The notes beneath the pieces were generated by a model. The model saw only the letters and a list, made by a program, of their open reading frames with translations. It made no database searches and was not told the origin of the DNA. A stretch of 64,000 nt of DNA from Syncephalis fuscata S228 (taxonomy: Eukaryota; Fungi; Zoopagomycota): the NCBI GenBank assembly GCA_025786725.1, contig JAHLTZ010000021.1, positions 310,001-374,000 on the forward strand. The letters are read 5' to 3'. Positions 8,863-64,000 of this stretch are shown here, one piece after another. The translations under genes and the position numbers were made by a program. Numbering within the stretch: the stretch's first letter is position 1; every line of letters starts with the position of its first letter.

Positions 8863-10037
8863 TACTGTACTTTGACTGCTACATTTTTATTTACTCATTT
8901 CATTACCTTTTTCTTATTGTTATTTTATCGTCTTATCTTTTTTTTAGTTGTTTTATTCAGTATTATATTATATGATAGTGTTGGATATAACAATATAAAT
9001 AGTATGTGTATTTGAACATCAATAAAAACACTATTCAATTCCCAGTCTTTACTTTTCTTATTTTACATCAACACCTGTTCAAGTAACTCAACAGCATGCC
9101 ATATATTCTGGTTATAACTGTCGCTATAAGATCTTCCTGGTGAAGACACTTAAACTATCATTATTGCATATGGTGGAGGCCATTTGCTTTATCAATGATA
9201 GGCAAAGAATCTGCATCTACTAAGTTGATATCAAGAATGCTCAAGAAAATGGTAATATCAGAAATGATGTCCTACCTTTTGTCACCATAGACGAGTATCT
9301 TACATAGTAATCTCCCATAGTACAGTATTAGAATATTAGAAAATAGAAGAAACCATTCAAATGCAATAATCCATGCTGTACATAGACGCAACAACAACAA
9401 CAACAACTGTGGAACGATATGGAATTGCGATCAATGGCTTCTATTAATATTCGATCAATCTTTCTACGCATGATCAACAACAACAATAATCGGCCTCAAA
9501 TGTCTCAAAGTAGTTAAATGAGCGTTATAACTATGTTTGTTGTGCATAACAGCATGACTTTAATTGGAACGAATTTTGCTTTGAAGATTACAAATAGGAG
9601 AGTCAAAGTTTAATTCAACCAATTGTAATTACGCCAGCCTACAATACTTGAATCATCTGCTACTTGCTATTGGATTATTCAAATAAGCTGGCATAACATT
9701 GCATCGACAAATCACACTTCTCAGTAGTGGAGACTGATCGACGCTTACTATTCAAGTTATTAGTATAAAACATGTTCATCAATAAAATAATGTATAATAA
9801 AAACATTAAAGCCATTTAATACTAAAAGTCGTTGTTATAGAGCGTACTGCCAATAAATTACTAAATGTAATAGAAAATAAGTACTAATTAATTGACACTG
9901 ATTAATTCAATCGGAGTTGATGTGGCACTACTTCAACAAACAAACCCCTCTCAGTAATAAAAACTGATTGACGATTTATTGTTCAAATTATTGATCTTTT
10001 TGTCCCCAGTTTGAAGCTAGGGAGTCAAAGTACAGTA
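8863..10037. mobile_element. Non-autonomous TIR element (MITE-like), copy 1
   Basis: Left end CTACTGTACTTTGACT (8862-8877) and right end AGTCAAAGTACAGTAG (10023-10038) are inverted repeats, with TA at both ends. About 700 bp (~9320-10033) is near-identical to ~31451-32153. No transposase ORF. Confidence 0.75.
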
Positions 10038-17157: not shown

Positions 17158-17619
17158 ATGTACAGCTTTACGACTACTAAAATTGCTTCTACAGCACTAG
17201 TGACCATAGCTATGGTGACACTAGCTGGTCATCTAACCAATGGATCCTCCTTTGACATGGAGAAACGTAGTAATCACGTTATTGGCGAACAGTCTGAAAG
17301 TAGTTTGGCTAAACGAGGCGACGGTACTTTCTACAACATGGAAGGCGGCTATACGGCGTGCGGCGAAAAGCATAGTGATAATGAGGCATACGCAGCCATT
17401 GCTCCCTCTTGGTTTACTGCTGCTGATCCAAATAAAGACCCAATGTGTAAAAAGTGTGCCCTTGTATCCGGACCCAAAGGCCAAGTTAAAGTGCACATCA
17501 ATGACATTTGCCCACCATGTGCGCGCGATAGCATCGATATGACTCCAGGTGCTTTCAATCAAATTGCTGATCCGTCTCAGGGCCGTGTACCTATTAGTTG
17601 GGATTTTACTGACTGTTAA
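17158..17619 (+). CDS. Secreted RlpA-like double-psi beta-barrel (loosenin/expansin-like) protein, intronless
   Basis: Signal-like hydrophobic N-terminus, two KR dibasic sites, GDGTFY..G..ACG, C..C, V.I.D.CP.C...IDMTP.AF..IA....GRVPISW. Confidence 0.85.
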   Translation: MYSFTTTKIASTALVTIAMVTLAGHLTNGSSFDMEKRSNHVIGEQSESSLAKRGDGTFYNMEGGYTACGEKHSDNEAYAAIAPSWFTAADPNKDPMCKKCALVSGPKGQVKVHINDICPPCARDSIDMTPGAFNQIADPSQGRVPISWDFTDC

Positions 17620-18169
17620 ACAGTTAATAAACAATATTTAGATTCGAATACATTTTCCAAAATTACATGTATAGTTTATCAATTGTGGACCTATATCATA
17701 GGTTAATTATTAATATTTTACTGGCACAATTTAGCGAATAAAGGTAGAAATAAAAGTCAAGATATTGTCACTACCTTGTATAAACGGGTATCAAGTAAAA
17801 GGGCTATTTTAAGAGGATTTAAATGCTTATTACCTTATTAAATGATTTTAAATAATAGCATCTTTATATAATTACTATTATACTTTTATACTATTATGTA
17901 CATTATGTATGTAAACTGACTGCTATACTTTAACTATACTACGTCATTTGTACTTTAATTAATAATCTAATTTTTAAAATAATTTAAAACTATTAAATAT
18001 GGTAACAATACCTATGCTACACGATTATATGGTTGCCTATGCTGCAGTTCTTGGCTTTGGTTTATAATAAATTATTTTTTCTTCCTAATTCATGTCTTTA
18101 TTTAAACCAACCAGCATTATCAGTTTATACAGTGCGATATCAAATCGAATTTTTATTTTAACAAATAGC

Positions 18170-19722
18170 ATGCTGGGATTACAAATATTTATGAAAGTGG
18201 ATATTGAGCCCGAACGTGGTGGCAGCGACAATAATGGCACATTTCTTGCACCCACGCCTGCCGAAGCGTATGATCCAATGCAAAATCATCTACAACAACA
18301 AAACGTAAACCAAGCGTTTCCTCGCCTTCAATTAGAAGAAAGACCAGCTGCGCAAATTAATGACAATGCAAATCTATTGTATCTGCCTGGACAAGTAAAT
18401 TCTTGTGCCGCACAGTCGAGTTCTAATCAGAATCTACAGGCATCGCCCAGGTATCTCGTCAACAATGTGCTGCAGCCTAATCGAGATCCACTAGTGATAG
18501 GCATGCTTGGTCGAACACCATCTTATCTTTGTGGCCGTGTGCGTATTTCTTGGAGTGCATCGCATTCGGCAGGCACTGAAGCCAGTCCAAATGGCTCATT
18601 GGTTTTCAACTCGTCCTGCACACCAGTGAAGCTAAAGTTGCACTTTCATGGCCAGTCATATGTGTACGAGGTTCGAAGTAATGGCACTCCTGAGCAAGGC
18701 TCTTATCGACACAAAGCCCATCGCTTCACTATAGTGGATGAGAACTTTGTAATCTGGAATAAGGACAGTGCAAAGGGTGCGTCCAATGCTCATATACGTC
18801 CTGTGTATAATCATGAAACAAAACGTTGCACGCTACTACTGCCATTTCAAATCCGCATTCCAGATGCCATTCCAAATAGCTATAAAACTAAGTTTGGCGA
18901 AGTGGAATATTCACTGAAAGCCAAGCTTACCTATCAGACCAACAACTTTTTCACCAGTCTTAAAGCTAACAGTAAACGTGATGTGACCATAAGACGATGG
19001 GCTGACTTTGGACAATCAGAGAATAATGTGTCGACCGTATTCCGTGTTATAGGCCCTATGCAGCACGGCTGGGCTACGCGTGTAATATTCAAATCCCACG
19101 TTCGTATTATGCCAGCGGTGATACGGCCCAGATAGATGTATTTGTTGGCCCGGGCCTTACAGATTTATTAACTCCCGAATCAAATAGTAACAATGGAAAA
19201 ACACAAGCAATCAGTGGGCTGGCAACGAGCTCTGCGGCAGAACCAAGCGTTAAATTGAAGCGTATATCTGTGCAGTTAACACGGCAAGAGCGTAGTAGCG
19301 GTTTTATTGGCAATAAGAAAAAAACTACAATTACTAAGGTGGACTTTAATGCTCCACCTTACAATCCCATTACAAAAGCATACAATGGTACAATATTTTT
19401 TCCAATTCCTCGCATCGATGCACCATCTCTTCAGGCGCACAAATTTACTGTTGAGTATATTTTAAAAGTAAAGCTGGTAATGCGTGGCAAGTCGGACACA
19501 AAGGCCAAATTTCCGATAACAGCACTATCTGTTACTCGAGACGAGCAATTTATGCCACCAGACACGCAGTATGGCTTACCGTTACATATTCGCAATACAG
19601 GCAATCAGTCATCGGATGGCAGTAGTAATAGCCAACTTGCATTGCCACCAGCACAACAACCACACAGTCAAGGATGGGATCAGTCATATGTTGAGCCGCC
19701 GCCACCTTATTCGTGTGGTTAA
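18170..19722 (+). CDS. Alpha-arrestin-like protein with C-terminal PPPY motif, copy 1 (frameshift ~19055)
   Basis: LPFQIRIPDAIPNSY...GEVEYSLKAKL (arrestin-N-like); RISVQL, VEYILKVKL, KFPIT (arrestin-C-like); terminal EPPPPYSCG. ORFs 18092-19135 and 19255-19722 join if one base is restored (compare copy 2). Start codon uncertain (18170 or 18191). Confidence 0.75.
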
Positions 19723-20186
19723 TATTAATATTAATAATTTAAATTATGCTAATACATCAATGAATTTAATCAGTGCAATGTTATTGAGTTATACCATATC
19801 GCGGCTATGATTTAAGCAACTAATAGGCAAATTTGCAAATGCACTACAGTTATGCTAAAAAGCTGTAAAACTCACATATTTTGTATAAGCATTGTATTTT
19901 GTTTATTTACTTATTTGCTACAATTGTTTAGATAACCAAGTATGCAATCTATGCTGCTTTAAAATACACTGCATCATTCTAAAGTAATTGTTTGACTAAT
20001 AGTATAGTTTACAGTGTATGTTTATTATGTAAATACATCATTGTTACTTTAGTTTACTCTGCCATTTCATTATTACAGATTCTAATGGAAAGTATCAAAC
20101 ATGTGTTTAACATATTTGCTATATTCAAATACAATCTACAAATGATTATTTATACTAGTTTCAATACAATGCTGAATATAATGTAG

Positions 20187-20276
20187 CAACACACGTTGTT
20201 ACACGACAGCACCATATATACGCGGCATAGGTCACATTGATTGCTGTTTGTTCTTTGTTCTATTTAGTCATTTAGT
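20187..20276 (+). promoter_or_regulatory. Conserved ~90-bp candidate core promoter of the F-box-like genes
   Basis: TTGTTACACGACAGCACC(C)ATATATACGCGGCATAGGTCAC... precedes all seven copies; in copy 6 upstream homology stops just beyond it (~46942). Confidence 0.5.
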
Positions 20277-21839
20277 ATGCAGCATATCCCTGTACCTGTT
20301 GTTGAGCGACTTGCGGTGTTTGCCGACGACAAGTCGCTGGTGCTGTTTGCGTCGTGCTCTCAGTGGCTGTGGCAGTGTGTTGGTATACAGCAGCGTGTAT
20401 GGCGACAGCGATATATACAGCACTACACGTTTAAAGACGACGACGAAGTGCAGTGGCTGTCGTGGTACGTACGCACACTGCGAGTGTCTGGCGCACTGGC
20501 AGCAACAAGCAACACGGCGATTGATGTCACCCAGCTGAATGACCATGATATCAACTGGTTCCGTGCATTCTGCATCGACGTGCCACCAGTGCCAACTGGC
20601 TACGAGACAGCCATATCCGATATATGACATAGTCGAAGATACATCGGACAGTGATCAGGTTATAGTATTGCAGCGTATAAGCAATAATAGTCGTATATTG
20701 GGAGAATGTGGTGTTATTGAGCAGTGCCAACCAATAGGGAAACCAAAACACCAACAATTTGGCGCTACGCAAAGTATGCTGTGATGGATTTGATCCAACA
20801 GTCAATGTGGAGCAATTTTTAGTATCAGACAAATTTGTCGTAATTGTCATTAAAAAAACGAATAAGGCCTCTAATGCTGTTGGAACACCATACAATGTTC
20901 TTATCTGGCCAGTACACCGAGTATCAACTATACAGCCATATTCTGTTCCTTATTTATGCAATCGGAAGTCATCTATTCGTGGCCGTTGGCTGTTACTTAA
21001 CTACATTGAAAGAAGTTTAAATCGCAAACTAGCACCACTATCGACAACTCGCGTATTTGATATGGCTACTCGGCAAATATGTATGGGAAGTATACAGAAT
21101 AGCAAAGGAACATCATTTATACAACGAGCCACTGAAGACACTGCTACTGTATTTTACGCATATATAGATAGAGTTGATACTTTTCAAACTGTCCATTGGA
21201 GCGTATGGCAATTTTCTGTTTGCCAGCTAGAAGACAATCCTCAATGTTTAATGCAAGGTGAATTCACTATTACATGCTTAGCAGTTCTTCAATGTCCTGT
21301 GGAAAGACTGGATGATGAGCGTGTGCTTGTAGCAAAACATGTTATGGGTGGTTTTAATGAATCAGCAAATGAAGTAAACAGCGAAGTATTAAGCCTTGCA
21401 GTAATTTTGACTAATTGCGACAATTCAAATCAATCCATGGATAATCAAAAACCTATTTGGTCGCATTATATTAAGATCAGTAAATGGAAAGCGCTTACAT
21501 CTCTTAACAAATTGCTATTATATCCTTTGAAAATGGTGCATTTACAATTTGGTAGACGGTACTATTTTATACCAAATCAATGCAGAAATATTAAGTCCAA
21601 TATTGCCGCGCTATTTTTCATATAGTTTAGAAAATAAGAGTAAAATACAAAACCTTATTGTTTATACTTCTATAGGAGAGCATCCTAAAATAATTGATTT
21701 GATTCAGCCGACTAATAGCAAACGACTTGGTATTGTAGATGCTGAATTGTTGGCTGTAGCATCAGTGAAATCAAACACAACAAATGCACTTGTTATGCAT
21801 TCCAAAGATGGCTATAAAATAGTTGATGTTTCGTGTTAA
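20277..21839 (+). CDS. F-box-like family protein, copy 1 (several apparent frameshifts)
   Basis: MQHIPVPVVERLAVFADDKSLVLFASCSQWLWQCV...VWRQRY fits the F-box pattern. Pieces 20277-20627, 20759-21625 and 21549-21839 align to intact copies 4 and 5. Confidence 0.7.
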
Positions 21840-22252
21840 TAAATACAAATATTGTTTAGTATATTATTTTATTACTGCTTTTAATTTATTTATTTATTGT
21901 TTAGATAATTAAGTATGCAATCTATGCTGATTTAAAATACACTGCATTATTCTAAAGTAATTGTTTGACTAATAGTATAGTTTACAGTGTATGTTTATTA
22001 TGTAAATACATCATTGTTGCCTTTAGTTTACTCTGCCATTTCATTATTACAGATTCTAATGGAAAGTATCAAACGATGTGTTTAACATATTTGCTATATT
22101 CAAATACAATCTACAAATGATTATTTATACTAGTTTCAATACAATGCTGAATATAATGTAGCAACACACGTTGTTACACGACAGCACCCATATATACGCG
22201 GCATAGGTCACATTGATTGCTGTTTGTTCTTTGTTCTATTTAGTCATTTAGT

Positions 22253-23822
22253 ATGCAGCATATCCCTGTACCTGTTGTTGAGCGACTTGCGGTGTTTGCC
22301 GACGACAAGTCGCTGGTGCTGTTTGCGTCGTGCTCTCAGTGGCTGTGGCAGTGTGTTGGTATACAGCAGCGTGTATGGCGACAGCGATATATACAGCACT
22401 ACACGTTTAAAGACGACGACGAAGTACAGTGGCTGTCGTGGTACGTACGCACACTGCGAGTGTCTGGCGCACTGGCAGTAACAAGCAACACGGCGATTGA
22501 TGTCACCCAGCTGAATGACCATGATATCAACTGGTTCCGTGCATTCTGCCATCGACGTGCCACCAGTGCCAACTGGCTACGAGACAAGCCATATCCGATA
22601 TATGACATAGTCGAAGATACATCGGACAGTGATCAGGTTATAGTATTGCAGCGTATAAGCAATAATAGTCGTATATTGGGAGAATGTGGTGTTATTGAGC
22701 AGTGCCAACCAATAGGGAAACCAAAACACCAGCAATTCTGGCGCTTACGCAAAGTATGCTGTGATGGATTTGATCCAGCGGTCAATGTGGAGCAATTTTT
22801 GGTATCAGACAAATTTGTCGTAATTGTCATTAAAAAAACGAATAAGGCCTCTAATGCTGTTGGAATACCATGCAATGTTCTTATCTGGCCAGTACACCGA
22901 GTATCAACTATACAGCCATATTTGCTCCTTATTTATGTAACAATGAAGTGTCTATTTGCGGCCGCTGGTTGTTATTCAACTATATTGAAAAAAGTTTAAA
23001 CCCTAAATTACTGCCACCATCAACAACTCGCGTATTTGATATGGCTACTCGCCAAATGTGCATGGGAAGTATACAGAACATCAACGGAACATCATTTATA
23101 CAACGAGCCACTGAAGACACCGCTACTGTATTTTATGCGTATACAATGCAATTGATACTTTTCAAACTGTCCATTGGAGTGTATGGCAATTTTCTGTTTG
23201 CCAGCTAGAAGACAATCCTCAATGTTTAATGCAAGGTGAATTTATCATTACATACTTGATAGCTCTTCGTTGCCCTGTAGAGAGACTGGATGATGAGCGT
23301 GTGCTTGTAGCAAAACATGTTATGGGTGGTTTTAATGAATCAGCAAATGAAGTAAACAGCGAAGTATTAAGCCTTGCAGTAATTTTGACTAATTGCGACA
23401 ATTCAAATCAATCCATGGATAATCAGAAGCCTATTTGGTCGCATTATATTGGAACTATTGACGCAATGCCAATCATTACTTTCAATGCCGTAGCAATAAT
23501 AGCTACGGAAGGATTGTTTGTATACAGCTTAGCTGATGGTGCCATTTTATCGAAAATTAGTACTGATAAATCGGAATCAATACTACCAAATTATATTTGG
23601 CATAATTTAAACAATAAGTATCAAATACAAAATTTTGTTGTTTGTACTTCCAAAGACAAGTGTACCAAAACAATCGTTGATTTGATTCAGCCAACTAATA
23701 GCAAACGACTTGGTATTGTAGATGCTGAATTGTTGGCCACATTGTCAGTGGAATCAATTACAGCAAATGCATTTGTTATGCATTCCAAAGATGGCTATAA
23801 AATAGTTGATGTTTCGTGTTAA
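22253..23822 (+). CDS. F-box-like family protein, copy 2 (frameshifts ~22922 and ~23145)
   Basis: Same N-terminus; pieces align to intact paralogs; ends YKIVDVSC*. Confidence 0.7.
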
Positions 23823-24235
23823 TAAATACAAATATTGTTTAGTATATTATTTTATTACTGCTTTTAATTTATTTATTTATTGTTTAGATAATTAAGTATG
23901 CAATCTATGCTGATTTAAAATACACTGCATTATTCTAAAGTAATTGTTTGACTAATAGTATAGTTTACAGTGTATGTTTATTATGTAAATACATCATTGT
24001 TGCCTTTAGTTTACTCTGCCATTTCATTATTACAGATTCTAATGGAAAGTATCAAACGATGTGTTTAACATATTTGCTATATTCAAATACAATCTACAAA
24101 TGATTATTTATACTAGTTTCAATACAATGCTGAATATAATGTAGCAACACACGTTGTTACACGACAGCACCCATATATACGCGGCATAGGTCACATTGAT
24201 TGCTGTTTGTTCTTTGTTCTATTTAGTCATTTAGT

Positions 24236-25795
24236 ATGCAGCATATCCCTGTACCTGTTGTTGAGCGACTTGCGGTGTTTGCCGACGACAAGTCGCTGGT
24301 GCTGTTTGCGTCGTGTTCTCAGTGGCTGTGGCAGTGTGTTGGTATACAGCAGCGTGTATGGCGACAGCGATATATACAGTACTACACGTTTAAAGACGAC
24401 GACGAAGTGCAGTGGCTGTCGTGGTACGTACGCACACTGCGAGTGTCTGGCGCACTGGCAGCAACAAGCAACACGGCGATTGATGTCACCCAGCTGAATG
24501 ACCATGATATCAACTGGTTCCGTGCATTCTGCCATCGACGTGCCACCAGTGCCAACTGGCTACGAGACAGGCCATATCCGATATATGACATAGTCGAAGA
24601 TACATCGGACAGTGATCAGGTTATAGTATTGCAGCGTATAAGCAACAATAGTCGTATATTGGGAGAATGTGGTGTTATTGAGCAGTGCCAACCAATAGGG
24701 AAACCAAAACACCAGCAATTCTGGCGCTTACGCAAAGTATGCTGTGATGGATTTGATCCAACAGTCAATGTGGAGCAATTTTTAGTATCAGACAAATTTG
24801 TCGTAATTGTCATTAAAAAAACGAATAAGGCCTCTAATGCTGTTGGAACACCATACAATGTTCTTATCTGGCCAGTACACCGAGTATCAACTATACAGCC
24901 ATATTCTGTTCCTTATTTATGCAATCGGAAGTCATCTATTCGTGGCCGTTGGCTGTTACTTAACTACATTGAAAGAAGTTTAAATCGCAAACTAGCACCA
25001 CTATCGACAACTCGCGTATTTGATATGGCTACTCGGCAAATGTGCATGGGAAGTATACAGAACATCAACGGAACATCATTTATACAACGAGCCACTGAAG
25101 ACACCGTACTGTATTTTATGCGTATACAAATGCAATTGATACTTTTCAAACTGTCCATTGGAGTGTATGGCAATTTTCTGTTTGCCAGCTAGAAGACAAT
25201 CCTCAATGTTTGACACAAGGCAAATTTATCATTACATACTCGTTTGATCTTCGTTGCCCTGTAGAAAGATTGGATGACGAACGTATACTTGTAAAAACTG
25301 TTGCGTGCGGTTTTGATGAATCAGCAAATGAATAAACAGCGAAGTATTAAGCCTTGCAGTGATTTCGACTAATTGCAACAATCCAAATCAATTCACGAAT
25401 AATCAGAAGCCTGTTTGGTCGCATTATATCGAGGTTATTAGTGCTATACCAATTATTACTTCCAATGCCATAGCAATAATAGCTTTAAAGGATTGTCTAT
25501 ATACAGCTTATCTGATGGTACCATGTTGTCACAAATTAATATGGAAGTATTGGAGTCAATAATACCAAATTTTGAATGGCATATATCAAAACTTTGTAAA
25601 ATTCAAAACCTTATTGTTTATACTCATATGGGAGGGCATCCTCAAATAATTGATTTGATTCAGCCGACTAATAACAAACGACTTGGTATTGTAGATGCTG
25701 AATTGTTGGCTGTAGCATCAGTGAAATCAAACACAACAAATGCACTTGTTATGCATTCCAAAGATGGCTATAAAATAGTTGATGTTTCGTGTTAA
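24236..25795 (+). CDS. F-box-like family protein, copy 3 (frameshifts ~25105, ~25332, ~25485)
   Basis: Same N-terminus; pieces align to intact paralogs; ends YKIVDVSC*. Confidence 0.7.
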
Positions 25796-26208
25796 TAAAT
25801 ACAAATATTGTTTAGTATATTATTTTATTACTGCTTTTAATTTATTTATTTATTGTTTAGATAATTAAGTATGCAATCTATGCTGATTTAAAATACACTG
25901 CATCATTCTAAAGTAATTGTTTGACTAATAGTATAGTTTACAGTGTATGTTTATTATGTAAATACATCATTGTTGCCTTTAGTTTACTCTGCCATTTCAT
26001 TATTACAGATTCTAATGGAAAGTATCAAACGATGTGTTTAACATATTTGCTATATTCAAATACAATCTACAAATGATTATTTATACTAGTTTCAATACAA
26101 TGCTGAATATAATGTAGCAACACACGTTGTTACACGACAGCACCCATATATACGCGGCATAGGTCACATTGATTGCTGTTTGTTCTTTGTTCTATTTAGT
26201 CATTTAGT

Positions 26209-27801
26209 ATGCAGCATATCCCTGTACCTGTTGTTGAGCGACTTGCGGTGTTTGCCGACGACAAGTCGCTGGTGCTGTTTGCGTCGTGCTCTCAGTGGCT
26301 GTGGCAGTGTGTTGGTATACAGCAGCGTGTATGGCGACAGCGATATATACAGCACTACACGTTTAAAGACGACGACGAAGTACAGTGGCTGTCGTGGTAC
26401 GTACGCACACTGCGAGTGTCTGGCGCACTGGCAGCAACAAGCAACACGGCGATTGATGTCACCCAGCTGAATGACCATGATATCAACTGGTTCCGTGCAT
26501 TCTGCCATCGACGTGCCACCAGTGCCAACTGGCTACGAGACAAGCCATATCCGATATATGACATAGTCGAAGATACATCGGACAGTGATCAGGTTATAGT
26601 ATTGCAGCGTATAAGCAATAATAGTCGTATATTGGGAGAATGTGGTGTTATTGAGCAGTGCCAACCAATAGGGAAACCAAAACACCAGCAATTCTGGCGC
26701 TTACGCAAAGTATGCTGTGATGGATTTGATCCAACAGTCAATGTGGAGCAATTTTTAGTATCAGACAAATTTGCAGTGGCTGTATGTGATCAAAGGAATA
26801 GCACTGCAAAGGATGCTGAACAAACAAGTATTATTCTTATTTGGCATGTACATAAACTATCATATGTACGACCACAAATTATTTTTGAATTATTTATCCA
26901 AAACATAGAAATCCGTGACCGTTGGATGCTTGTTACTTATATTGATAAGAGCGAAAAAATGGCCGGTGGCCCTTCTTTAATAATAGCCACGCGCGTTTTT
27001 GACCTTGCGACAGGTCAGATGTGCATGGGTGCCATTAAAAATGTCAGAGGAAAAACGTTTTTACATCGAGTTACCAACGAGACGGCAGACATAGTATATA
27101 CTACTATTGCTGATGTGCCTGGCTTTCATATAATTAACTGGAGCATTTGGCAATTTTCTATTTTGTTAATCGAAGATACTCCTCGGTGTTTAATGGAAGG
27201 AAAGTGCACTATTTCATACACGATGGAGGTTTACAGTCCGTTAGAAAGATTAGATGAAGATCGTTTTTTAATTCGACACGGCATCAGGCAATTTTTTAAC
27301 GCATCAGCTAGTGAACAAAACCCAGAGGTGTTGAATTTAGCTGTTATTTCAACTCGCTCCGATGGCTTGAATCAAGATATAAATAATCAAAATTTCATGT
27401 GGTCCCATTACATAGACATTTATGACGCAACACCGATCCTTTCACTTGACAGGATTATCACTTCATCCAAGCAAGGATGGACGGTATATGATTTGACAAA
27501 TGGCGCAGTATTATCACATATTGACAGGAGCAGGCTAGAACTAGTATTCTCGCACTACCTTACTCCTGGAGTGGGCATTAACTTGATAGGAAAGACATGC
27601 TGGATTCCAGGCTTTGTTATTTGCCAAGGAAAAGACGAATACTCTATAATGCTAATGGATTTGTTGCATCCAGAACGTAGTAGACCATTAAAAATAATGG
27701 ACACCACTACGACTTTAAATACTACGCCAAAGCAATGTACTCGAAACGCACTTTTTATATCCCAAAATGATAAATATAAGATTATTGACTTGTCATGCTA
27801 A
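26209..27801 (+). CDS. F-box-like family protein, copy 4 (intact 530 aa, divergent C-terminal domain)
   Basis: Uninterrupted intronless ORF; matches paralogs to ...FLVSDKF, then strongly divergent but collinear. Confidence 0.85.
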   Translation: MQHIPVPVVERLAVFADDKSLVLFASCSQWLWQCVGIQQRVWRQRYIQHYTFKDDDEVQWLSWYVRTLRVSGALAATSNTAIDVTQLNDHDINWFRAFCHRRATSANWLRDKPYPIYDIVEDTSDSDQVIVLQRISNNSRILGECGVIEQCQPIGKPKHQQFWRLRKVCCDGFDPTVNVEQFLVSDKFAVAVCDQRNSTAKDAEQTSIILIWHVHKLSYVRPQIIFELFIQNIEIRDRWMLVTYIDKSEKMAGGPSLIIATRVFDLATGQMCMGAIKNVRGKTFLHRVTNETADIVYTTIADVPGFHIINWSIWQFSILLIEDTPRCLMEGKCTISYTMEVYSPLERLDEDRFLIRHGIRQFFNASASEQNPEVLNLAVISTRSDGLNQDINNQNFMWSHYIDIYDATPILSLDRIITSSKQGWTVYDLTNGAVLSHIDRSRLELVFSHYLTPGVGINLIGKTCWIPGFVICQGKDEYSIMLMDLLHPERSRPLKIMDTTTTLNTTPKQCTRNALFISQNDKYKIIDLSC

Positions 27802-29413: not shown

Positions 29414-30267
29414 TTACACTTTAAATGATGTAAATAGTCGGGATTGTCGCATATCCTCGGCAACATAATCATTTTCATCCATTATTATACCCTCGCCTTT
29501 TAAAAGCATTTGTTTATCGCAAATGTCACTGCCTTTCCCCCATGTACTATGTTTATAGCGTAATTGAGTATTTGTAACAATAAAACATCTATTTATAAAC
29601 TACCTACCCACGAAATCCACCGATAAATGCATTGCTAGTCAAAACACGGTGGCCTATCTAATGTTGAGTACACTAACAGGCTTAATACTATATACGTACA
29701 TGGCACAGGTAATGGCGCAAATGGGTTGCATCTCAATGCTTGTCCCACTAATAGATAATAAGTCAATTGTCATAATGATGGACATTCTGCTTATCATACC
29801 TGCACGTGGAGACCCTTTAATTGAGTCGGAAATCTGTTTATAAGTCGAGTAGTAGCCTAATGATAAATTAGTACGTGCTTGATTATTTAGCATACTAATA
29901 AAATGCCATTTACCTTCAGGAATCTAAATGGATAAGCATAATACATTTGTTTAGTTAAATAGTTAAAGCAAGTCGTATTTACTTACTTGTGCACATAAAT
30001 CGTAGACGCGAAACTGGAATTCTGTTACGCGACGACCTGTTGTTGAATTAATAAAGTTTTCTCGCTCCTTTACACTAAGTGGGTAGTAAACTATTATAAA
30101 AAATTAGATGGTTTGATATAAATGATAAATGACAAGTACATACTTGTTGACACTGCTTCGTTCGATGGTGCTTTGTCACCCGTATCATTTTTTTGCAATT
30201 TTGCACTGAAGTAAGGCGACTGAGTACTAGTCTTTTGGTTTATTTTACGCTTTGCAACACGCGGCAT
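29414..30267 (-). CDS. MGT1: O6-methylguanine-DNA methyltransferase, multi-exon
   Basis: VTEFQFRVYDLCAQ/IPEG, STYKQISDSIKGSPRA/VGQALRCNPFAP, active-site PCHRV split by an intron, K..LL..EG. Probable 1-nt deletion in the last exon. Confidence 0.9.
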
Positions 30268-31164: not shown

Positions 31165-32153
31165 TACTGTACTTTCACTCCTACATTTTTATTTATTCAT
31201 TTCATCAGTATAACATGTATAATATTGCATCCAACATTAATTAATTTATGTGTAATTATCAATACAATAATGTAATTAATTAGCTATATTTATTATTGCT
31301 TTAATATATATATATTGTCATTATAATATTTATTGTTCAAAATGCCATTTATTTAGTCAGATTGGCTATAGGAAAAGTGGCTGTTTAATAAATGACTTTT
31401 ATAATAAGTATATTAATCTTGAGTTTACATCACAAATATGCCCAAAGTGCAACAGTAGAATATTAGAAAATAGAAGAAACCATTCAGACGCAATAATCCA
31501 TGCTGTACATAGACGCAACAACAACTGTGGAACGATATGGAATTGCGATCAATGGCTTCTATTAATATTCGATCAATCTTTCTACGCATGGTTAACAGCA
31601 ACAATAATCGGCCTCAAATGTCTCAAAGTAGTTAAATGAGCGTTATAACTATGTTTGTTGTGCATAACAGCATGACTTTAATTGGAACGAATTTTGCTTT
31701 GAAGATTACAAATAGGAGAGTCAAAGTTTAATTCAACTAATTGTAATTACGCCAGCCTACAATACTTGAATCATCTGCTACTTGCTATTGGATTATTCAA
31801 ATAAGCTGGCATAACATTGCATCGACAAATCACACTTCTCAGTAGTGGAGACTGATCGACGGCTTACTATTCAAGTTATTAGTATAAAACATGTTCATCA
31901 ATAAAATAATGTATAATAAAAACATTAAAGCCATTTAATACTAAAAGTCGTTGTTATAGAGCGTACTGCCAATAAATTACTAAATGTAATAGAAAATAAG
32001 TACTAATTAATTGACACTGATTAATTCAATCGGAGTTGATGTGGCACTACTTCAACAAACAAACCCCTCTCAGTAATAAAAACTGATTGACGATTTATTG
32101 TTCAAATTATTGATCTTTTTGTCCCCAGTTTGAAGCTAGGGAGTCAAAGTACA
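31165..32153. mobile_element. Non-autonomous TIR element (MITE-like), copy 2
   Basis: Left end GCTACTGTACTTTCACTCCTACATTTTTATTTA matches copy 1; right end GCTAGGGAGTCAAAGTACA; shared ~700-bp core. Confidence 0.75.
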
Positions 32154-43305: not shown

Positions 43306-44871
43306 TTAACACGAAACATCAACTATTTTATAGCCATCTTTGGAATGCATAACAAGTGCATTTGTTGTGTTTGATTCCACCGATGCGATAGCCAACAATT
43401 CAGCATCTACAATACCAAGTCGTTTGCTATTAGTCGGCTGAATCAAATCAATTATTTTAGTATGTTCCCCTGTAGGTGTATAAACAACAAGGTTTTGAAT
43501 TTTACAAAGTTTTGATATATACCAATCAAAACGTGGCATTATTGACTCCAATACTTCCATATTAATTTGTGACAACATGGTACCATCAGATAAACTGTAT
43601 ATAGACAATCCCTTTGAAGCTATTATTGCTATGGCATTGGAAGTAATAATTGGTATAGCACTAATAACCTCGATATAATGCGACCAAACAGGCTTCTGAT
43701 TATTCGTGAATTGATTTGGATTGTTGCAATTAGTCGAAATCACTGCAAGACTTAACACTTCGCTGTTTACTTCATTTGCTGCTTCATTGAAACCACACGC
43801 AACAGTTTTTACAACAAGTACACGATCGTCATCCAGTCTTTCTACAGGGCAACAAAGATCAAACGAGTATGTAATGATAAATTTGCCTTGTGTCAAACAT
43901 TGAGGATTGTCTTCTAGCTGGCAAACAGAAAATTGCCATACACTCCAATAGACAGTTTGAAAAGTATCAATTGCATCTGTATACGCATAAAATACAGTAG
44001 CGGTGTCTTCAGTGGCTTGTTGTACAAATGATGTCCCTTTGATGTTCTGTATATTTCCCAGACATATTTGCCGAGTAGCCATATCAAATACACGAGTTGT
44101 CGATAGTGGCGGTAATTTGGTATTTATATTTTTTTCAATATAATTAAATAACAACCAGCGGCCGCGAATAGATATTCCTCTATTGCATAAATAAGGAACA
44201 GAGTATGGCTGTATTGTTGATACTCGATGTATTGGCCAGATAAGAACACTGCATGATGTTCCATAAATATTGATGTATTCATTTGTTTTTTTAAAAACAG
44301 CTACGACAAATTTGTCTGATACTAAAAATTGCTCCACATTGACTGTTGGATCAAATCCATCACAGCATACTTTGCGTAAGCGCCAGAATTGCTGGTGTTT
44401 TGGTTTCCCTATTGGTTGGCACTGCTCAATAACACCACATTCTCCCAATATACGATTATTATTGCTTATACGCTGCAATACTATAACCTGATCACTGTCC
44501 GATGTATCTTCGACTATGTCATATATCGGATATGGCTTGTCTCGTAGCCAGTTGGCACTGGTGGCACGTCGATGACAGAATGCACGAAACCAGTTGATAT
44601 CATGGTCATTCAGCTGGGTGACATCAATCGCCGTGTTGCTTGTTGCTGCCAGTGCGCCAGACACTCGCAGTGTGCGTACGTACCACGACAGCCACTGCAC
44701 TTCGTCGTCGTCTTTAAACGTGTAGTGCTGTATATATCGCTGTCGCCATACACGCTGCTGTATACCAACACACTGCCACAGCCACTGAGAGCACGACGCA
44801 AACAGCACCAGCGACTTGTCGTCGGCAAACACCGCAAGTCGCTCAACAACAGGTACAGGGATATGCTGCAT
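43306..44871 (-). CDS. F-box-like family protein, copy 5 (intact 521 aa)
   Basis: Uninterrupted intronless ORF with the family N-terminus and YKIVDVSC end. Confidence 0.85.
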   Translation of the reverse strand: MQHIPVPVVERLAVFADDKSLVLFASCSQWLWQCVGIQQRVWRQRYIQHYTFKDDDEVQWLSWYVRTLRVSGALAATSNTAIDVTQLNDHDINWFRAFCHRRATSANWLRDKPYPIYDIVEDTSDSDQVIVLQRISNNNRILGECGVIEQCQPIGKPKHQQFWRLRKVCCDGFDPTVNVEQFLVSDKFVVAVFKKTNEYINIYGTSCSVLIWPIHRVSTIQPYSVPYLCNRGISIRGRWLLFNYIEKNINTKLPPLSTTRVFDMATRQICLGNIQNIKGTSFVQQATEDTATVFYAYTDAIDTFQTVYWSVWQFSVCQLEDNPQCLTQGKFIITYSFDLCCPVERLDDDRVLVVKTVACGFNEAANEVNSEVLSLAVISTNCNNPNQFTNNQKPVWSHYIEVISAIPIITSNAIAIIASKGLSIYSLSDGTMLSQINMEVLESIMPRFDWYISKLCKIQNLVVYTPTGEHTKIIDLIQPTNSKRLGIVDAELLAIASVESNTTNALVMHSKDGYKIVDVSC

Positions 44872-45283: not shown

Positions 45284-46852
45284 TTAACACGAAACATCAA
45301 CTATTTTATAGCCATCTTTGGAATGCATAACAAGTGCATTTGTTGTGTTTGATTCCACCGATGCGATAGTCAGCAATTCAGCATCTACAATACCAAGTCG
45401 TTTGCTATTAGTCGGCTGAATCAAATCAATTATTTTAGGATGCTCTCCTATAGAAGTATAAACAATAAGGTTTTGTATTTTACTCTTATTTTCTAAACTA
45501 TATGAAAAATAGCGCGGCAATATTGGACTTAATATTTCTGCATTGATTTGGTATAAAATAGTACCGTCTACCAAATTGTAAATGCACCATTTTTCAAAGG
45601 ATATAATAGCAATTTTGTTAAGAGATGTAAGCGCTTTCCATTTACTGATCTTAATATAATGCGACCAAATAGGTTTTTGATTATCCATGGATTGATTTGA
45701 ATTGTCGCAATTAGTCGAAATTACTGCAAGACTTAACACTTCGCTGTTTACTTCGTTCGCCGATTCATTAAAACCACCCATGGCAGGTTTTACAACAAGT
45801 ACACGCTCGTCATCCAGTCTTTCTACAGGGCAACGAAGATCAAACAAGTATGTAATAATAAATTTGCCTTGTGTCAAACATTGAGGATTGTCTTCTAGCT
45901 GGCAAACAGAAAATTGCCATACACTCCAATAGACAGTTTGAAAAGTATCAATTGCATCTGTATACGCATAAAATACAGTAGCGATGTCTTCAGTGGCTCA
46001 TTGTATAAATGATGTTCCGTTGCTATTCTGTATACTTCCCATGCACATTTGCCGAGTAGCCATATCAAATACACGAGTTGTCGATAGTGGCAGTAATTTG
46101 GTATTTAAACTTCTTTTAGTATGATTAAATAATAACCAGCGGTTACGAATAAACGTTTCTCTATTGCATAAATAAGGAGCAGAATATGGCTGTATTGTTG
46201 ATACTCGGTGTATTGGCCAGATAAGAACATTGTACGGTGTCTCGAAAGGATCGATGTATTCATTTGTTTTTTTAATGACAATTACGACAAATTTGTCTGA
46301 TACTAAAAATTGCTCCACATTGACTGTTGGATCAAATCCATCACAGCATACTTTGCGTAAGCGCCAGAATTGCTGGTGTTTTGGTTTCCCTATTGGTTGG
46401 CACTGCTCAATAACACCACATTCTCCCAATATACGATTATTATTGCTTATACGCTGCAATACTATAACCTGATCACTGTCCGATGTATCTTCGACTATGT
46501 CATATATCGGATATGGCTTGTCTCGTAGCCAGTTGGCACTGGTGGCACGTCGATGACAGAATGCACGAAACCAGTTGATATCATGGTCATTCAGCTGGGT
46601 GACATCAATCGCCGTGTTGCTTGTTGCTGCCAGTGCGCCAGACACTCGCAGTGTGCGTACGTACCACGACAGCCACTGCACTTCGTCGTCGTCTTTAAAC
46701 GTGTAGTGCTGTATATATCGCTGTCGCCAAACATGTTGTTGTATACCAACACACTGCCACAGCCACTGAGAGCACGACGCAAACAGCACCAGCGACTTGT
46801 CGTCGGCAAACACCGCAAGTCGCTCAACAACAGGTACAGGGATATGCTGCAT
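45284..46852 (-). pseudogene. F-box-like family, copy 6, with in-frame premature stop
   Basis: IQR codon CGA of copies 1-3 is TGA at 45998-46000; the downstream frame stays open to YKIVDVSC*. Confidence 0.65.
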
Positions 46853-59528: not shown

Positions 59529-61021
59529 TTGCCAAGCAAATATTCAATAAAGAATTAGCTTGATTCATGTAAATCTATTTTAATCAAGTGACTGTATTTA
59601 ATAATTGAACATTTAATTTGAACAAATGATAATACGTTAATATTTCATGATAAGCAGTGTAATATTCTATATACCAATGAAAATACCACTATATATTGGT
59701 ATAGCTTATTCTGTAATATATTGCTTTAATATAAACAGACACTTTCTATAATGTTACTGGTTATAATAAATATGACATTCTATTATAAATTGTAACAGTT
59801 TAATAGCAAGCATGTTTATTGACGAAGAACCAAACAAATGTTAATAATGTATAATAGCAATAAAATGTTTGCAAAAATGCAATAATAACGATATTAGCAA
59901 AGTATTATTAATTTTAATTGATTATAAATAAATATTAGTATATTACTCCACCTGGACATCACATTAATTACACTATATAGTAGTGTATAAACCATAATTT
60001 ATAACGAAATAGATTTAAAATGATGATGTAATACGTCACTTGATCATTTGACTTGTATTACGCTATTAATATATTATACTTACACTATTTATTTAGTCTG
60101 CTGTCTTATTTGTGTTTATATTATTAGATGGTTATTAAATAGCATATTAATATTGTAAATTTATTCTACGGTATAGTATTTTATATATAGCGAATATATT
60201 TTATTAATAAAACTTTGTTTACTGCTAATTGCATCAATTATGGATTTCAGCTTATTTTACTTATACTCAATTACGCACATTGTAGCTTTATCATTATTTT
60301 TGCTTCATTTTCTTTTATCCATTTGTCTGTCCTATACCATTATATATTTTATTTGGTTATTTATTTATATCAATGTCATCTTATATTGAACTACCAATAT
60401 AAGCATGATATTTGAAAAAAATAGAGATAGTAAAAAAGTAAAGAGAATAGGATATAAGACCATTAAACTTGAAAAAAAGTAGTATTAAGCCTAAATCTTT
60501 TACAACAATGTAATATTCTTACATACATATTTATTACATTCATAACTAACATTTATACTAAAATAATGATTTGTATTAAAAAATACTGTTTTAATATATA
60601 TTGATTTGCTAAAAGGCTTGGTATCTATATTTAACTATAATGCATCATTTGCACATTGATTATTGCTTTGCTTTTAGATGCTTCAGTTCCATTAAATATA
60701 ATAATCCATTTATTACGCTGAAACTTATCCATTATGGTAGACTTAAAACAAGTTGCACGTTTGAAATGTTGCTAATTTGAATCCACTTTCTATTTATACT
60801 TGAACGGTGGTTGTAAGCTACTAATCCAAAAGTTTTATTTTGTTGCAGTGTTCCACGTTTTTATCTATTAATAAAATACTACTTTCTTTATACGTTATGT
60901 TCATTTTAGGCAATATAATGTCTGCATTGCCACCACCTTTTATTGATATGACAATATATGATGTCACCTATAGCGTACAGAACAAAGCATTACAACGCTT
61001 TGTTACACGACCACGTGATTA

Positions 61022-63830
61022 CCTATGCTGCAGTTCTTGGCTTTGGTTTATAATAAATTATTTTTTCTTCCTAATTCATGTCTTTATTTAAACCAACCAG
61101 CATTATCATTTATACAGTGCGATATCAAAATCGAATTTTTATTTTAACAAATAGCATGCTGGGATTACAAATATTTATGAAAGTGGATATTGAGCCCGAA
61201 CGTGGTGGCAGCGACAATAATGGCACATTTTTGCACCCACGCCTGCCGAAGCGTATGATCCAATGCAAAATCATCTACAACAACAAAACGTAAACCAAGC
61301 GTTTCCTTGCCTTCAATTAGAAGAAAGACCAGCTGCGCAAATTAATGACAATGCAAATTATTGTATCTGCCTGGACAAGTAAATTCTTATGCCGCACAGT
61401 CGAGTTCTAATCAGAATCTACAGGCATCGCCCAGGTATCTCGTCAACAATGTGCTGCAGCCTAATCGAGATCCACTAGTGATAGGCATGCTTGGTCGAAC
61501 ACCATCTTATCTTTGTGGCCGTGTGCGTATTTCTTGGAGTGCATCGCATTCGGCAGGCACTGAAGTCAGCCCAAATGGCTCATTGGTTTTCAACTCGTCC
61601 TGCACACCAGTGAAGCTAAAGTTGCACTTTCATGGCCAGTCATATGTGTACGAGGTTCGAAGTAATGGCACTCCTGAGCAAGGCTCTTATCGACACAAAG
61701 CCCATCGCTTCACTATAGTGGATGAGAACTTTGTAATCTGGAATAAGGACAGTGCAAAGGGTGCGTCCAATGCTCATATACGTCCTGTGTATAATCATGA
61801 AACAAAACGTTGCACGCTACTACTGCCATTTCAAATCCGCATTCCAGATGCCATTCCAAATAGCTATAAAACTAAGTTTGGCGAAGTGGAATATTCACTG
61901 AAAGCCAAGCTTACCTATCAAACCAACAACTTTTTCACCAGTCTTAAAGCTAACAGTAAACGTGATGTGACCATAAGACGATGGGCTGACTTTGGACAAT
62001 CAGAGAATAATGTGTCGACCGTATTCCGTGTTATAGGACCCTATGCAGCACGGCTGGGCTACGCGTGTAATATTCAAATCCCACGTTCGTATTATGCCAG
62101 CGGTGATACGGCCCAGATAGATGTATTTGTTGGCCCGGGCCTTACAGATTTATTAACTCCCGAATCAAATAGTAACAATGGAAAAACACAAGCAATCAGT
62201 GGGCTGGCAACGAGCTCTGCGGCAGAACCAAGCGTTAAATTGAAGCGTATATCTGTGCAGTTAACACGGCAAGAGCGTAGTAGCGGTTTTATTGGCAATA
62301 AGAAAAAAACTACAATTACTAAGGTGGACTTTAATGCTCCACCTTACAATCCCATTACAAAAGCATACAATGGTACAATATTTTTTCCAATTCCTCGCAT
62401 CGATGCACCATCTCTTCAGGCGCACAAATTTACTGTTGAGTATGTTTTAAAAGTAAAGCTGGTAATGCGTGGCAAGTCGGACACAAAGGCCAAATTTCCG
62501 ATAACAGCACTATCTGTTACTCGAGACGAGCAATTTATGCCACCAGACACGCAGTATGGCTTACCGTTACATATTCGCAATACAGGCAATCAGTCATCGG
62601 ATGGCAGTAGTAATAGCCAACTTGCATTGCCACCAGCACAACAACCACACAGTCAAGGATGGGATCAGTCATATGTTGAGCCGCCGCCACCTTATTCGTG
62701 TGGTTAATATTAATATTAATAATTTAAATTATGCTAATACATCAATGAATTTAATCAGTGCAATGTTATTGAGTTTACTATATCGCGGCTATGATTTAAG
62801 CAACTAATAGGCAAATTTGCAAATGCATTACAGTTATGCTAAAAAGCTGTAAAACTCACATATTTTGTATAAGCATTGTATCTTTGTTTATTTACTTATT
62901 TGCTACAATTGTTTAGATAACCAAGTATGCAATCTATGCTGATTTAAAATACACTGCATTATTCTAAAGTAATTGTTTGACTAATAGTATAGTTTACAGT
63001 GTATGTTTATTATGTAAATACATCATTGTTGCCTTTAGTTTACTCTGCCATTTCATTATTACAGATTCTAATGGAAAGTATCAAACGATGTGTTTAACAT
63101 ATTTGCTATATTCAAATACAATCTACAAATGATTATTTATACTAGTTTCAATACAATGCTGAATATAATGTAGCAACACACGTTGTTACACGACAGCACC
63201 CATATATACGCGGCATAGGTCACATTGATTGCTGTTTGTTCTTTGTTCTATTTAGTCATTTAGTATGCAGCATATCCCTGTACCTGTTGTTGAGCGACTT
63301 GCGGTGTTTGCCGACGACAAGTCGCTGGTGCTGTTTGCGTCGTGTTCTCAGTGGCTGTGGCAGTGTGTTGGTATACAGCAGCGTGTATGGCGACAGCGAT
63401 ATATACAGCACTACACGTTTAAAGACGACGACGAAGTACAGTGGCTGTCGTGGTACGTACGCACACTGCGAGTGTCTGGCGCACTGGCAACAACAAGCAA
63501 CACGGCGATTGATGTCACCCAGCTGAATGACCATGATATCAACTGGTTCCGTGCGTTCTGCCATCGACGTGCCACCAGTGCCAACTGGCTACGAGACAGG
63601 CCATATCCAATATATGACATAGTCGAGGATACATCGGACAGTGATCAGGTTATAGTATTGCAGCGTATAAGCAATAATAGTCGTATATTGGGAGAATGTG
63701 GTATTATTGAGCAATGCCAACCAATAGGAAAACCAAAACACCAGCAATTCTGGCGCTTACGCAAAGTATGCTGTGATGGATTTGATCCAACAATTAATGT
63801 GGAGCAATTTTTAGTATCAGACAAATTTGT
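61022..63830 (+). repeat. Near-identical duplicate of ~18036-20840 (arrestin, spacer and F-box 5' half)
   Basis: Identity begins at CCTATGCTGCAGTTCTTGGC in both places (~43.0 kb apart) and decays right after ...TCAGACAAATTTGTCGTA. Confidence 0.92.
61157..62707 (+). CDS. Alpha-arrestin-like PPPY protein, copy 2 (frameshifts ~61230 and ~61360)
   Basis: Near-identical to 18170-19722; the 448-aa ORF 61361-62707 is continuous across the site broken in copy 1. Confidence 0.75.
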
Positions 63831-64000
63831 CGTAGCTGTTTTTGAACAAGTGGATAGCAATTTTAGTACTTTCAAGACACCATACAATGTTCTTATCTGG
63901 CCAATACATCGAGTATCAACAATACAGCCATATTCTGCTCCTTATTTATGTAACAATGAAATGTCTATTCGCGGCCGCTGGTTGTTATTTAATCATACTA
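63265..64000 (+). CDS. F-box-like family protein, copy 7 (runs off window end)
   Basis: Family ATG context TTAGTATGCAGCAT and open frame to the window edge. Confidence 0.85.
   Translation, partial: MQHIPVPVVERLAVFADDKSLVLFASCSQWLWQCVGIQQRVWRQRYIQHYTFKDDDEVQWLSWYVRTLRVSGALATTSNTAIDVTQLNDHDINWFRAFCHRRATSANWLRDRPYPIYDIVEDTSDSDQVIVLQRISNNSRILGECGIIEQCQPIGKPKHQQFWRLRKVCCDGFDPTINVEQFLVSDKFVVAVFEQVDSNFSTFKTPYNVLIWPIHRVSTIQPYSAPYLCNNEMSIRGRWLLFNHT

Follow-up and report, generated by a model that had tools for sequence, protein, structure and literature searches.

In Syncephalis fuscata S228, a Zoopagales fungus that does not cause disease in humans, animals or crop plants and whose genus consists of obligate mycoparasites, we find a set of F-box/WD40-like genes whose paralogs trade sequence by ectopic gene conversion and by unequal or inverted crossover, both within and between three arrays. 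The genes lie in a stretch of 64,000 nucleotides (positions 310,001 to 374,000, forward strand, of contig JAHLTZ010000021.1 in assembly GCA_025786725.1), which we call the window. The interpretation that we favor, and hold to be reasonably probable, is that they encode a cytoplasmic repertoire of substrate adaptors of the FBXW type for the Skp1–cullin–F-box (SCF) ubiquitin ligase, a repertoire that owes its diversity to ectopic conversion of the ordinary kind and to unequal crossover, and that is directed against foreign or selfish targets.

Self-comparison of the window reveals seven copies (c1 to c7) of a ~1.98 kb unit (unit length 1973-1983 bp) in three arrays (Table 1), all at the places where a first-pass annotation of this DNA had put seven intronless paralogs; none of the copies requires an intron. 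The ORF (open reading frame) of c7 is completed beyond the window, in a contig stretch that runs past the window end (L006), as an intact frame of 522 aa (L006 12110-13678), and an eighth intact copy, c8, comes next (L006 14092-15657, 521 aa). Every copy is full length, with no partial cassettes elsewhere in the window, and four copies (c4, c5, c7 and c8) have intact ORFs. The public gene set carries 122-aa models in another frame for the intact c7 and c8 and a 291-aa truncation for c4, and protein databases therefore under-count the subfamily.

The copies share a common front. Codons 1-188 are 96.6-99.6% identical in DNA across the seven window copies, and beyond codon 188 identity is 81-91% among c1, c2, c3, c5 and c6 and 53-55% for c4; in all eight copies divergence sets in at one place, codons 189-191. 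The promoter had been described as equally invariant, which is true of all copies but one: ~350 nt upstream are common to the others, and c6 shares only ~85-90 nt before its ATG. Synonymous divergence (dS) is 0.037 and the ratio of nonsynonymous to synonymous rates (omega) 0.16 in codons 1-188, against 0.30 and 0.44 in codons 189-521; silent divergence is thus ~8-fold lower in the front part, and homogenization is needed to explain it, beyond any constraint on the protein. In a codon model the 5' part also has an omega of 0.23 (P=6e-5 vs 1). These codon models are our own implementation applied to seven sequences, and are of low power and approximate; in broken copies every break was set to N or X, gene models from the database were taken by their ids for local comparisons, and one alignment includes the model P0001. 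As to base composition, GC content at third codon positions (GC3) in codons 1-110 of all copies is 0.58, compared with 0.26-0.35 downstream and with values of 0.39-0.41 for two dispersed paralogs of S. fuscata, and 21 of the 33 minority variants of the constant part are G>A or C>T. When GC-biased conversion was considered, the same GC3 gradient was seen in a metagenomic relative, and codons 111-188 lack raised GC3. There is also no sign that the constant segment derives from a transposon; orthologous coding sequence is present in relatives.

Downstream of this front the copies are mosaics. The long blocks that had been named for c1/c3, c1/c2, c1/c6 and c3/c5 are tracts with no or very few substitutions (Table 1), and in each variable segment there are three to six alleles among seven copies, differently combined. 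Two statements of the first-pass annotation needed amendment. Copy c7, said to mix motifs of c2, c5 and c6, has only short motifs in common with them inside the window, its long tracts lying beyond it (c6-type from codon 311, c8-type in codons 247-347); and c4 departs from the single mosaic pattern given for all copies, as its 3' part has no tract in common with any other copy. The proposed ectopic gene conversion or unequal crossover stands: the PHI (pairwise homoplasy index) test gives P=5e-5, the permutation floor, for five copies and likewise for c5-c8 alone, which have no frameshifts. Among c5-c8 the grouping itself switches, pairing c5 with c6 and c7 with c8 in the 5' part and in codons 249-310, and c5 with c8 and c6 with c7 in codons 356-456. 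In approximately unbiased (AU) tests the trees of ten blocks reject one another in nearly all comparisons; these blocks were picked from the data, and PHI is therefore the independent test of recombination. Because tract ends are located in strands and in loops alike, shuffling of whole blades or domains was rejected, and what had been called shuffled C-terminal domains are patches within a single domain.

Searches of Pfam and of PDB sequences with single window proteins gave no match, and the information came from family profiles and the fold search alone. Relatives are numerous (139 clusters at 50% identity); those bearing a species name are all from Syncephalis or Thamnocephalis, and several are labelled F-box in UniRef. 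A profile of the family N-terminus matches Fbw7 (E=2e-4) over the F-box and linker motif, nearly all its other matches being F-box proteins, and 31 of 47 family N-termini match Pfam F-box-like (PF12937) at E<=1 (best 2.3e-7). The AlphaFold2 single-chain model of c5 (predicted local distance difference test 90.2, predicted template modeling (TM) score 0.90) comprises an F-box (residues 1-50, with helices 6-15, 18-25, 29-36 and 39-49), linker helices (55-107) and a propeller (116-518) that is closed by residues 116-121 and, read from its strand pattern, has a predicted eight blades. Its top Foldseek matches are Fbw7 (E=1.5e-11, TM 0.47-0.56), Cdc4, FBXW8, FBXW11 and beta-TrCP. By profile, model and Foldseek, the N-terminus earlier taken for an F-box thus belongs to an architecture like that of Fbw7 and Cdc4. 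The Pfam WD40 family has no match in the window proteins, and among 67 relatives there is one weak match to ANAPC4_WD40; as modeled, the propeller is WD40-like by fold and partial motifs only, and the F-box is degenerate. In the c5 model the constant codons 1-188 span the F-box, the linker helices, the closing strand, blade 1 and strand a of blade 2. In other words, the constant region is predicted to stop at strand b of blade 2, within the propeller, and is larger than the Skp1-docking module with which it had been equated. A viral origin was considered and rejected, as the best viral folds are F-box/WD proteins of giant viruses, with 9% identity and TM values below that of Fbw7. Within the family, a further large clade (P0038-P0091) stands apart; it has ~30 diverged members, those identified come from Thamnocephalis sphaerospora, and it suggests an independent expansion.

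FBXW proteins bind their substrates with the top face of the propeller. We classed the propeller loops as top (d-a and b-c) or bottom (a-b and c-d), anchored on an alignment with beta-TrCP. Variable sites make up 64 of 92 positions in top loops, 16 of 65 in bottom loops and 65 of 173 in strands (top vs bottom P=3e-8), and omega is 1.05, 0.20 and 0.32, respectively (P=2e-19). These figures support a concentration of variation in the loops assigned to the putative substrate-binding face.

The copy c4 has a history of its own. Its 3' part, with 35-38% amino-acid identity to the other copies, groups with P0016, the family gene of S. plumigaleata (ultrafast bootstrap 85), monophyly of the window copies being rejected (AU P=2.6e-5), and it has been open since before the split from that species. 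Its 5' part, by contrast, matches c5 at 99% identity and groups with a metagenomic relative, P0002, which is itself placed beside an ENTH-locus sequence. Since the 3' part goes with P0016 while the 5' part resembles c5, c4 is an old paralog with a replaced front end. The syntenic S. plumigaleata locus holds P0016 as its one family gene, compared with eight S. fuscata copies in three arrays; P0016 has an ENTH gene on one side and, on the other, a block whose last genes are SMC2, YEATS and GIT; DPBB, arrestin and Rav1 come next. The S. fuscata ENTH gene is located upstream of c6, and that downstream block comes after c4 with its order preserved. The break in the ancestral locus lies at the F-box genes and plausibly arose by an inversion between copies in opposite orientation, other orders of events being possible. 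The array of arrestin, c7 and c8 looks like a copy of the c6-c5 pair (94.7%) whose 5' halves were homogenized locally after the duplication. Among 67 proteins of the family the constant/variable contrast was found only in the c4/c5 pair, in sets clustered at 50-90% identity and drawn from an annotation that misses copies.

How might these observations fit together? We propose a recently amplified subfamily of Zoopagales FBXW-type SCF substrate adaptors, in which, by analogy with the FBXW family, the F-box would dock on Skp1 and the top face would select substrates to be ubiquitylated within the cytoplasm of the fungus itself. Homogenization and purifying selection both act on the promoter and codons 1-188; downstream, old diverged loop alleles persist and are recombined, and each copy therefore carries a different combination of top-face loops. 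That homogenizing tracts end where the first variable top loop begins (codons 195-206) may reflect an advantage of distinct specificities, and the targets may be fast-changing foreign or selfish proteins, whether viral, host-derived, endobacterial or encoded by transposons. Copy c4 is the extreme product, the propeller of an ancient paralog joined to the promoter, F-box and blade 1 now in use. Dedicated diversifying machinery need not be invoked. S. fuscata is a reported host of a tombus-like virus (PMC7482067), at most a candidate target class.

Several points weigh against this proposal. The window copies alone do not match the Pfam F-box, and a model of the N-terminal part alone gives weak Foldseek matches (E 0.13-10), mostly to F-box complexes. 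The loops were classed as top or bottom by secondary structure and by the register of WD40 motifs rather than by coordinates. The top-loop omega does not differ from 1 (P=0.74; 0.72 with separate synonymous rates), and the codon site models, which had been suggested as a check, detect no significant omega>1 among seven copies with a tree per block (M1a/M2a P=0.48, M7/M8 P=0.16, M8a/M8 P=0.12), 25 of the 30 top-ranked codons in these non-significant tests being located in top loops; relaxed constraint on the top loops fits the omega data equally well. Additionally, half of the eight copies are broken in the assembly, namely c1-c3 by frameshifts and c6 by an in-frame stop, on all of which the first-pass annotation was silent. 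The one-base deletions in c1-c3 are probably consensus or assembly errors in repeats, because c1 has, in its promoter and 5' part, seven such deletions against two private substitutions, and the two arrestin copies are likewise gap-rich (seven gaps and eight substitutions); the c6 stop, being a substitution, may be real.

The strongest alternative, possible but clearly less probable than our proposal, is that the array is a neutral by-product of rearrangement and of tandem FBXW amplification, with ordinary ectopic recombination among neighboring repeats, loops drifting under relaxed constraint, several copies decaying, and a 5' part that stays alike simply because similarity begets conversion. 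Such drift would suit the top-loop omega near 1, the non-significant site tests and the c6 stop codon, but not the conserved bottom loops, long ones included (omega 0.20), nor the intact ORFs that four copies retain. The arrays lie at local rearrangement breakpoints relative to S. plumigaleata, with an arrestin gene carried along, and the remaining S. fuscata members of the family that were examined are dispersed single genes, as a by-product of rearrangement would have it; the onset of divergence at codons 189-191 in all eight copies, and the long-open 3' part of c4, speak against such a by-product.

Two further possibilities would tie the genes to the host fungus, and both seem to us improbable. 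An actively renewed combinatorial library, in which frequent recombination during a strain's lifetime yields new top-face combinations on a fixed F-box scaffold and the resulting proteins target host-derived ones at the haustorial interface or across it, would, if true, amount to a host-range or counter-defense system of the mycoparasite. Alternatively, the proteins could be effectors delivered through the haustorium that take over the host's SCF ligase so that host proteins are destroyed, with conserved host Skp1 as the docking site of the constant part. F-box effectors are known from bacteria and viruses, the fungus is a biotrophic mycoparasite, and the species-named family matches all come from Syncephalis or Thamnocephalis; yet the protein begins directly with its F-box, which starts at residue 4, and a crude check without a dedicated predictor found no apparent classical signal peptide or similar stretch (three of the first 20 residues are acidic), and a literature search found no paper on such translocation in these fungi. 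Least probable of all, mosaics created by assembly or polishing from collapsed or heterozygous repeats would agree with the poor consensus in c1 and the arrestin copies and with the finding that most early-diverging fungi tested are non-haploid (PMC6784888), but the signal persists among c5-c8, which lack indels and occupy 4-kb arrays flanked by unique sequence; alternative blocks diverge at up to 45% of bases, more than polishing could swap, and the c4 junction is a clean intact ORF with an ancestral 3' flank.

Each ingredient of this system has a precedent, and the pattern of a constant front and a variable surface is known from animal and plant F-box genes. The FBXW proteins (Fbw7, Cdc4, beta-TrCP/FBXW11, FBXW8) share the F-box, linker helices with a W-x-x-A-x-x-x-R...NW motif, closing strand and eight-blade propeller, but the S. 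fuscata proteins have 9-13% identity to them, no Pfam WD40 match and a degenerate F-box, and their genes are multi-copy and recombining, whereas FBXW genes are conserved and single. In mouse, a tandem cluster at Fbxw12 is attributed to unequal crossover and its selected residues fall mostly in the WD40 substrate channel, and in primates a conversion tract of Fbxo6/Fbxo44 covers the F-box and part of the substrate domain (PMC3984280); here, by contrast, the genes are intronless, the conversion boundary is common to eight copies, the propeller itself is patchwork, and site tests for positive selection are not significant. Two features of the birth–death F-box families of nematodes, plants and rodents, lineage-specific tandem expansion and purifying selection on the F-box side (omega 0.16-0.23), are found here as well. 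According to two papers that cite Thomas 2006 (PMC12062965, PMC8120010), Caenorhabditis F-box/FTH and FBA2 genes combine tandem expansion and purifying selection on the F-box with a diverse substrate domain; these differ in C-terminal domain, in numbering hundreds of genes and in demonstrated positive selection, and neither paper mentions gene conversion. The het-d/het-e/het-r genes of the Podospora HNWD family reshuffle WD-propeller recognition surfaces within and between loci (PMC1805685, PMC2873952), but they encode NLRs that exchange near-identical internal repeats as units, whereas here exchange occurs at equivalent positions of paralogs and the blades are dissimilar; the window proteins have no NACHT match, and self-comparison shows repeats between genes only and none within a gene. 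TLR1 and TLR6 are tandem paralogs in which conversion with recurring boundaries homogenizes a partner-binding region while the recognition region diverges (PMC2077338), although they are two membrane receptors without a mosaic repertoire. Cassette antigenic variation of the VSG or vlsE kind, with one expression site and silent promoterless donors, does not describe this array, because all copies are full length and the same upstream segment stands before seven of the eight.

The surroundings of the arrays contain further features (Table 1). The arrestin-domain duplicates (18012-19925 and 60998-62910) are ~99.5% identical apart from one-base gaps in both. Arrestin-domain proteins are also ubiquitin-ligase adaptors; the linkage to the F-box genes nevertheless looks incidental, because the S. 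plumigaleata arrestin ortholog has no F-box neighbor. Gene order at 17158-62707 is rearranged relative to that species, with F-box arrays at the GIT/DPBB, arrestin/Rav1 and ENTH junctions. A small DPBB (RlpA/expansin-like) protein at 17158-17619, conserved and syntenic in S. plumigaleata, has a hydrophobic N-terminus and is probably secreted, and a gene at 29414-30267 (-), in the ancestral block downstream of c4, matches Pfam DNA_binding_1 (alkyltransferase-like). A 720-bp non-coding repeat (9314-10034 and 31441-32153, 97% identical), without terminal inverted repeats or ORF and found in part on another contig (L002 21094-21179), is possibly a non-autonomous element. No RNA genes were found in the window.

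Table 1. Features of the F-box gene arrays and the co-duplicated arrestin genes, in window positions (arrays: c1-c4, 20277-27801, +; c6-c5, 46852-43306, -; c7, 63265 onward, +).
Feature	Position	Strand	ATG	Remarks
Arrestin-domain gene copy 1	18012..19722	+		co-duplicated with start of F-box array; one-base deletions
c1 upstream (promoter) segment	19925..20276	+		~350 nt; same segment ahead of c2, c3, c4, c5, c7, c8
c1	20277..21839	+	20277	six one-base deletions in coding region (after 20572, 20608, 20759, 20765, 21509, about 21527)
c1=c3 tract	20755..21078 / 24716-25041	+		326 nt, codons 161-269; no substitutions
c1=c2 tract	21305..21447 / 23283-23425	+		143 nt, codons 345-392; identical
c1=c6 tract	21409..21749 / 45716-45374	+		340 nt, codons 379-492; no substitutions; c6 on opposite strand, 24 kb off
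c2	22253..23822	+	22253	one-base deletions (after 22922 and 23145); own alleles from blade 6 to strand a of blade 8
c2=c3 tract	23053..23227 / 25037-25211	+		codons 268-326; no substitutions
c3	24236..25795	+	24236	one-base deletions (after 25106, 25332, 25486); in-frame 3-nt deletion (after 25292)
c3~c5 tract	25361..25562 / 43741-43539	+		202 nt, codons 377-445; 3 differences
c4 constant 5' part	26209..26773	+	26209	codons 1-188; sharp boundary at nt 565/566
c4 3' part	26774..27801	+		ancient paralog; ORF intact, 530 aa
c5	43306..44871	-	44871	intact, 521 aa; source of structure model
c6	45284..46852	-	46852	free of frameshifts; codon 285 is an in-frame TGA (45998-46000); unique upstream region adjoining ENTH gene (ancestral neighbor)
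Arrestin-domain gene copy 2	60998..62707	+		one-base deletions
c7	63265..64000	+	63265	truncated by window end

A literature search, conducted outside most subscription journals, found no paper on this F-box family in Zoopagales and none linking Syncephalis with F-box genes. To our knowledge, almost nothing is known of the molecular dealings of biotrophic mycoparasites with their hosts, viruses and endosymbionts. The precedents (tandem F-box clusters, conversion on the F-box side, a variable propeller face) limit the surprise; the array also reveals a gene system missed by public annotation. With its near-identical scaffolds, a handful of interchangeable loop alleles and one ancient propeller behind a current front end, it is a small natural test set for how repertoires of ubiquitin-ligase adaptors gain specificities.

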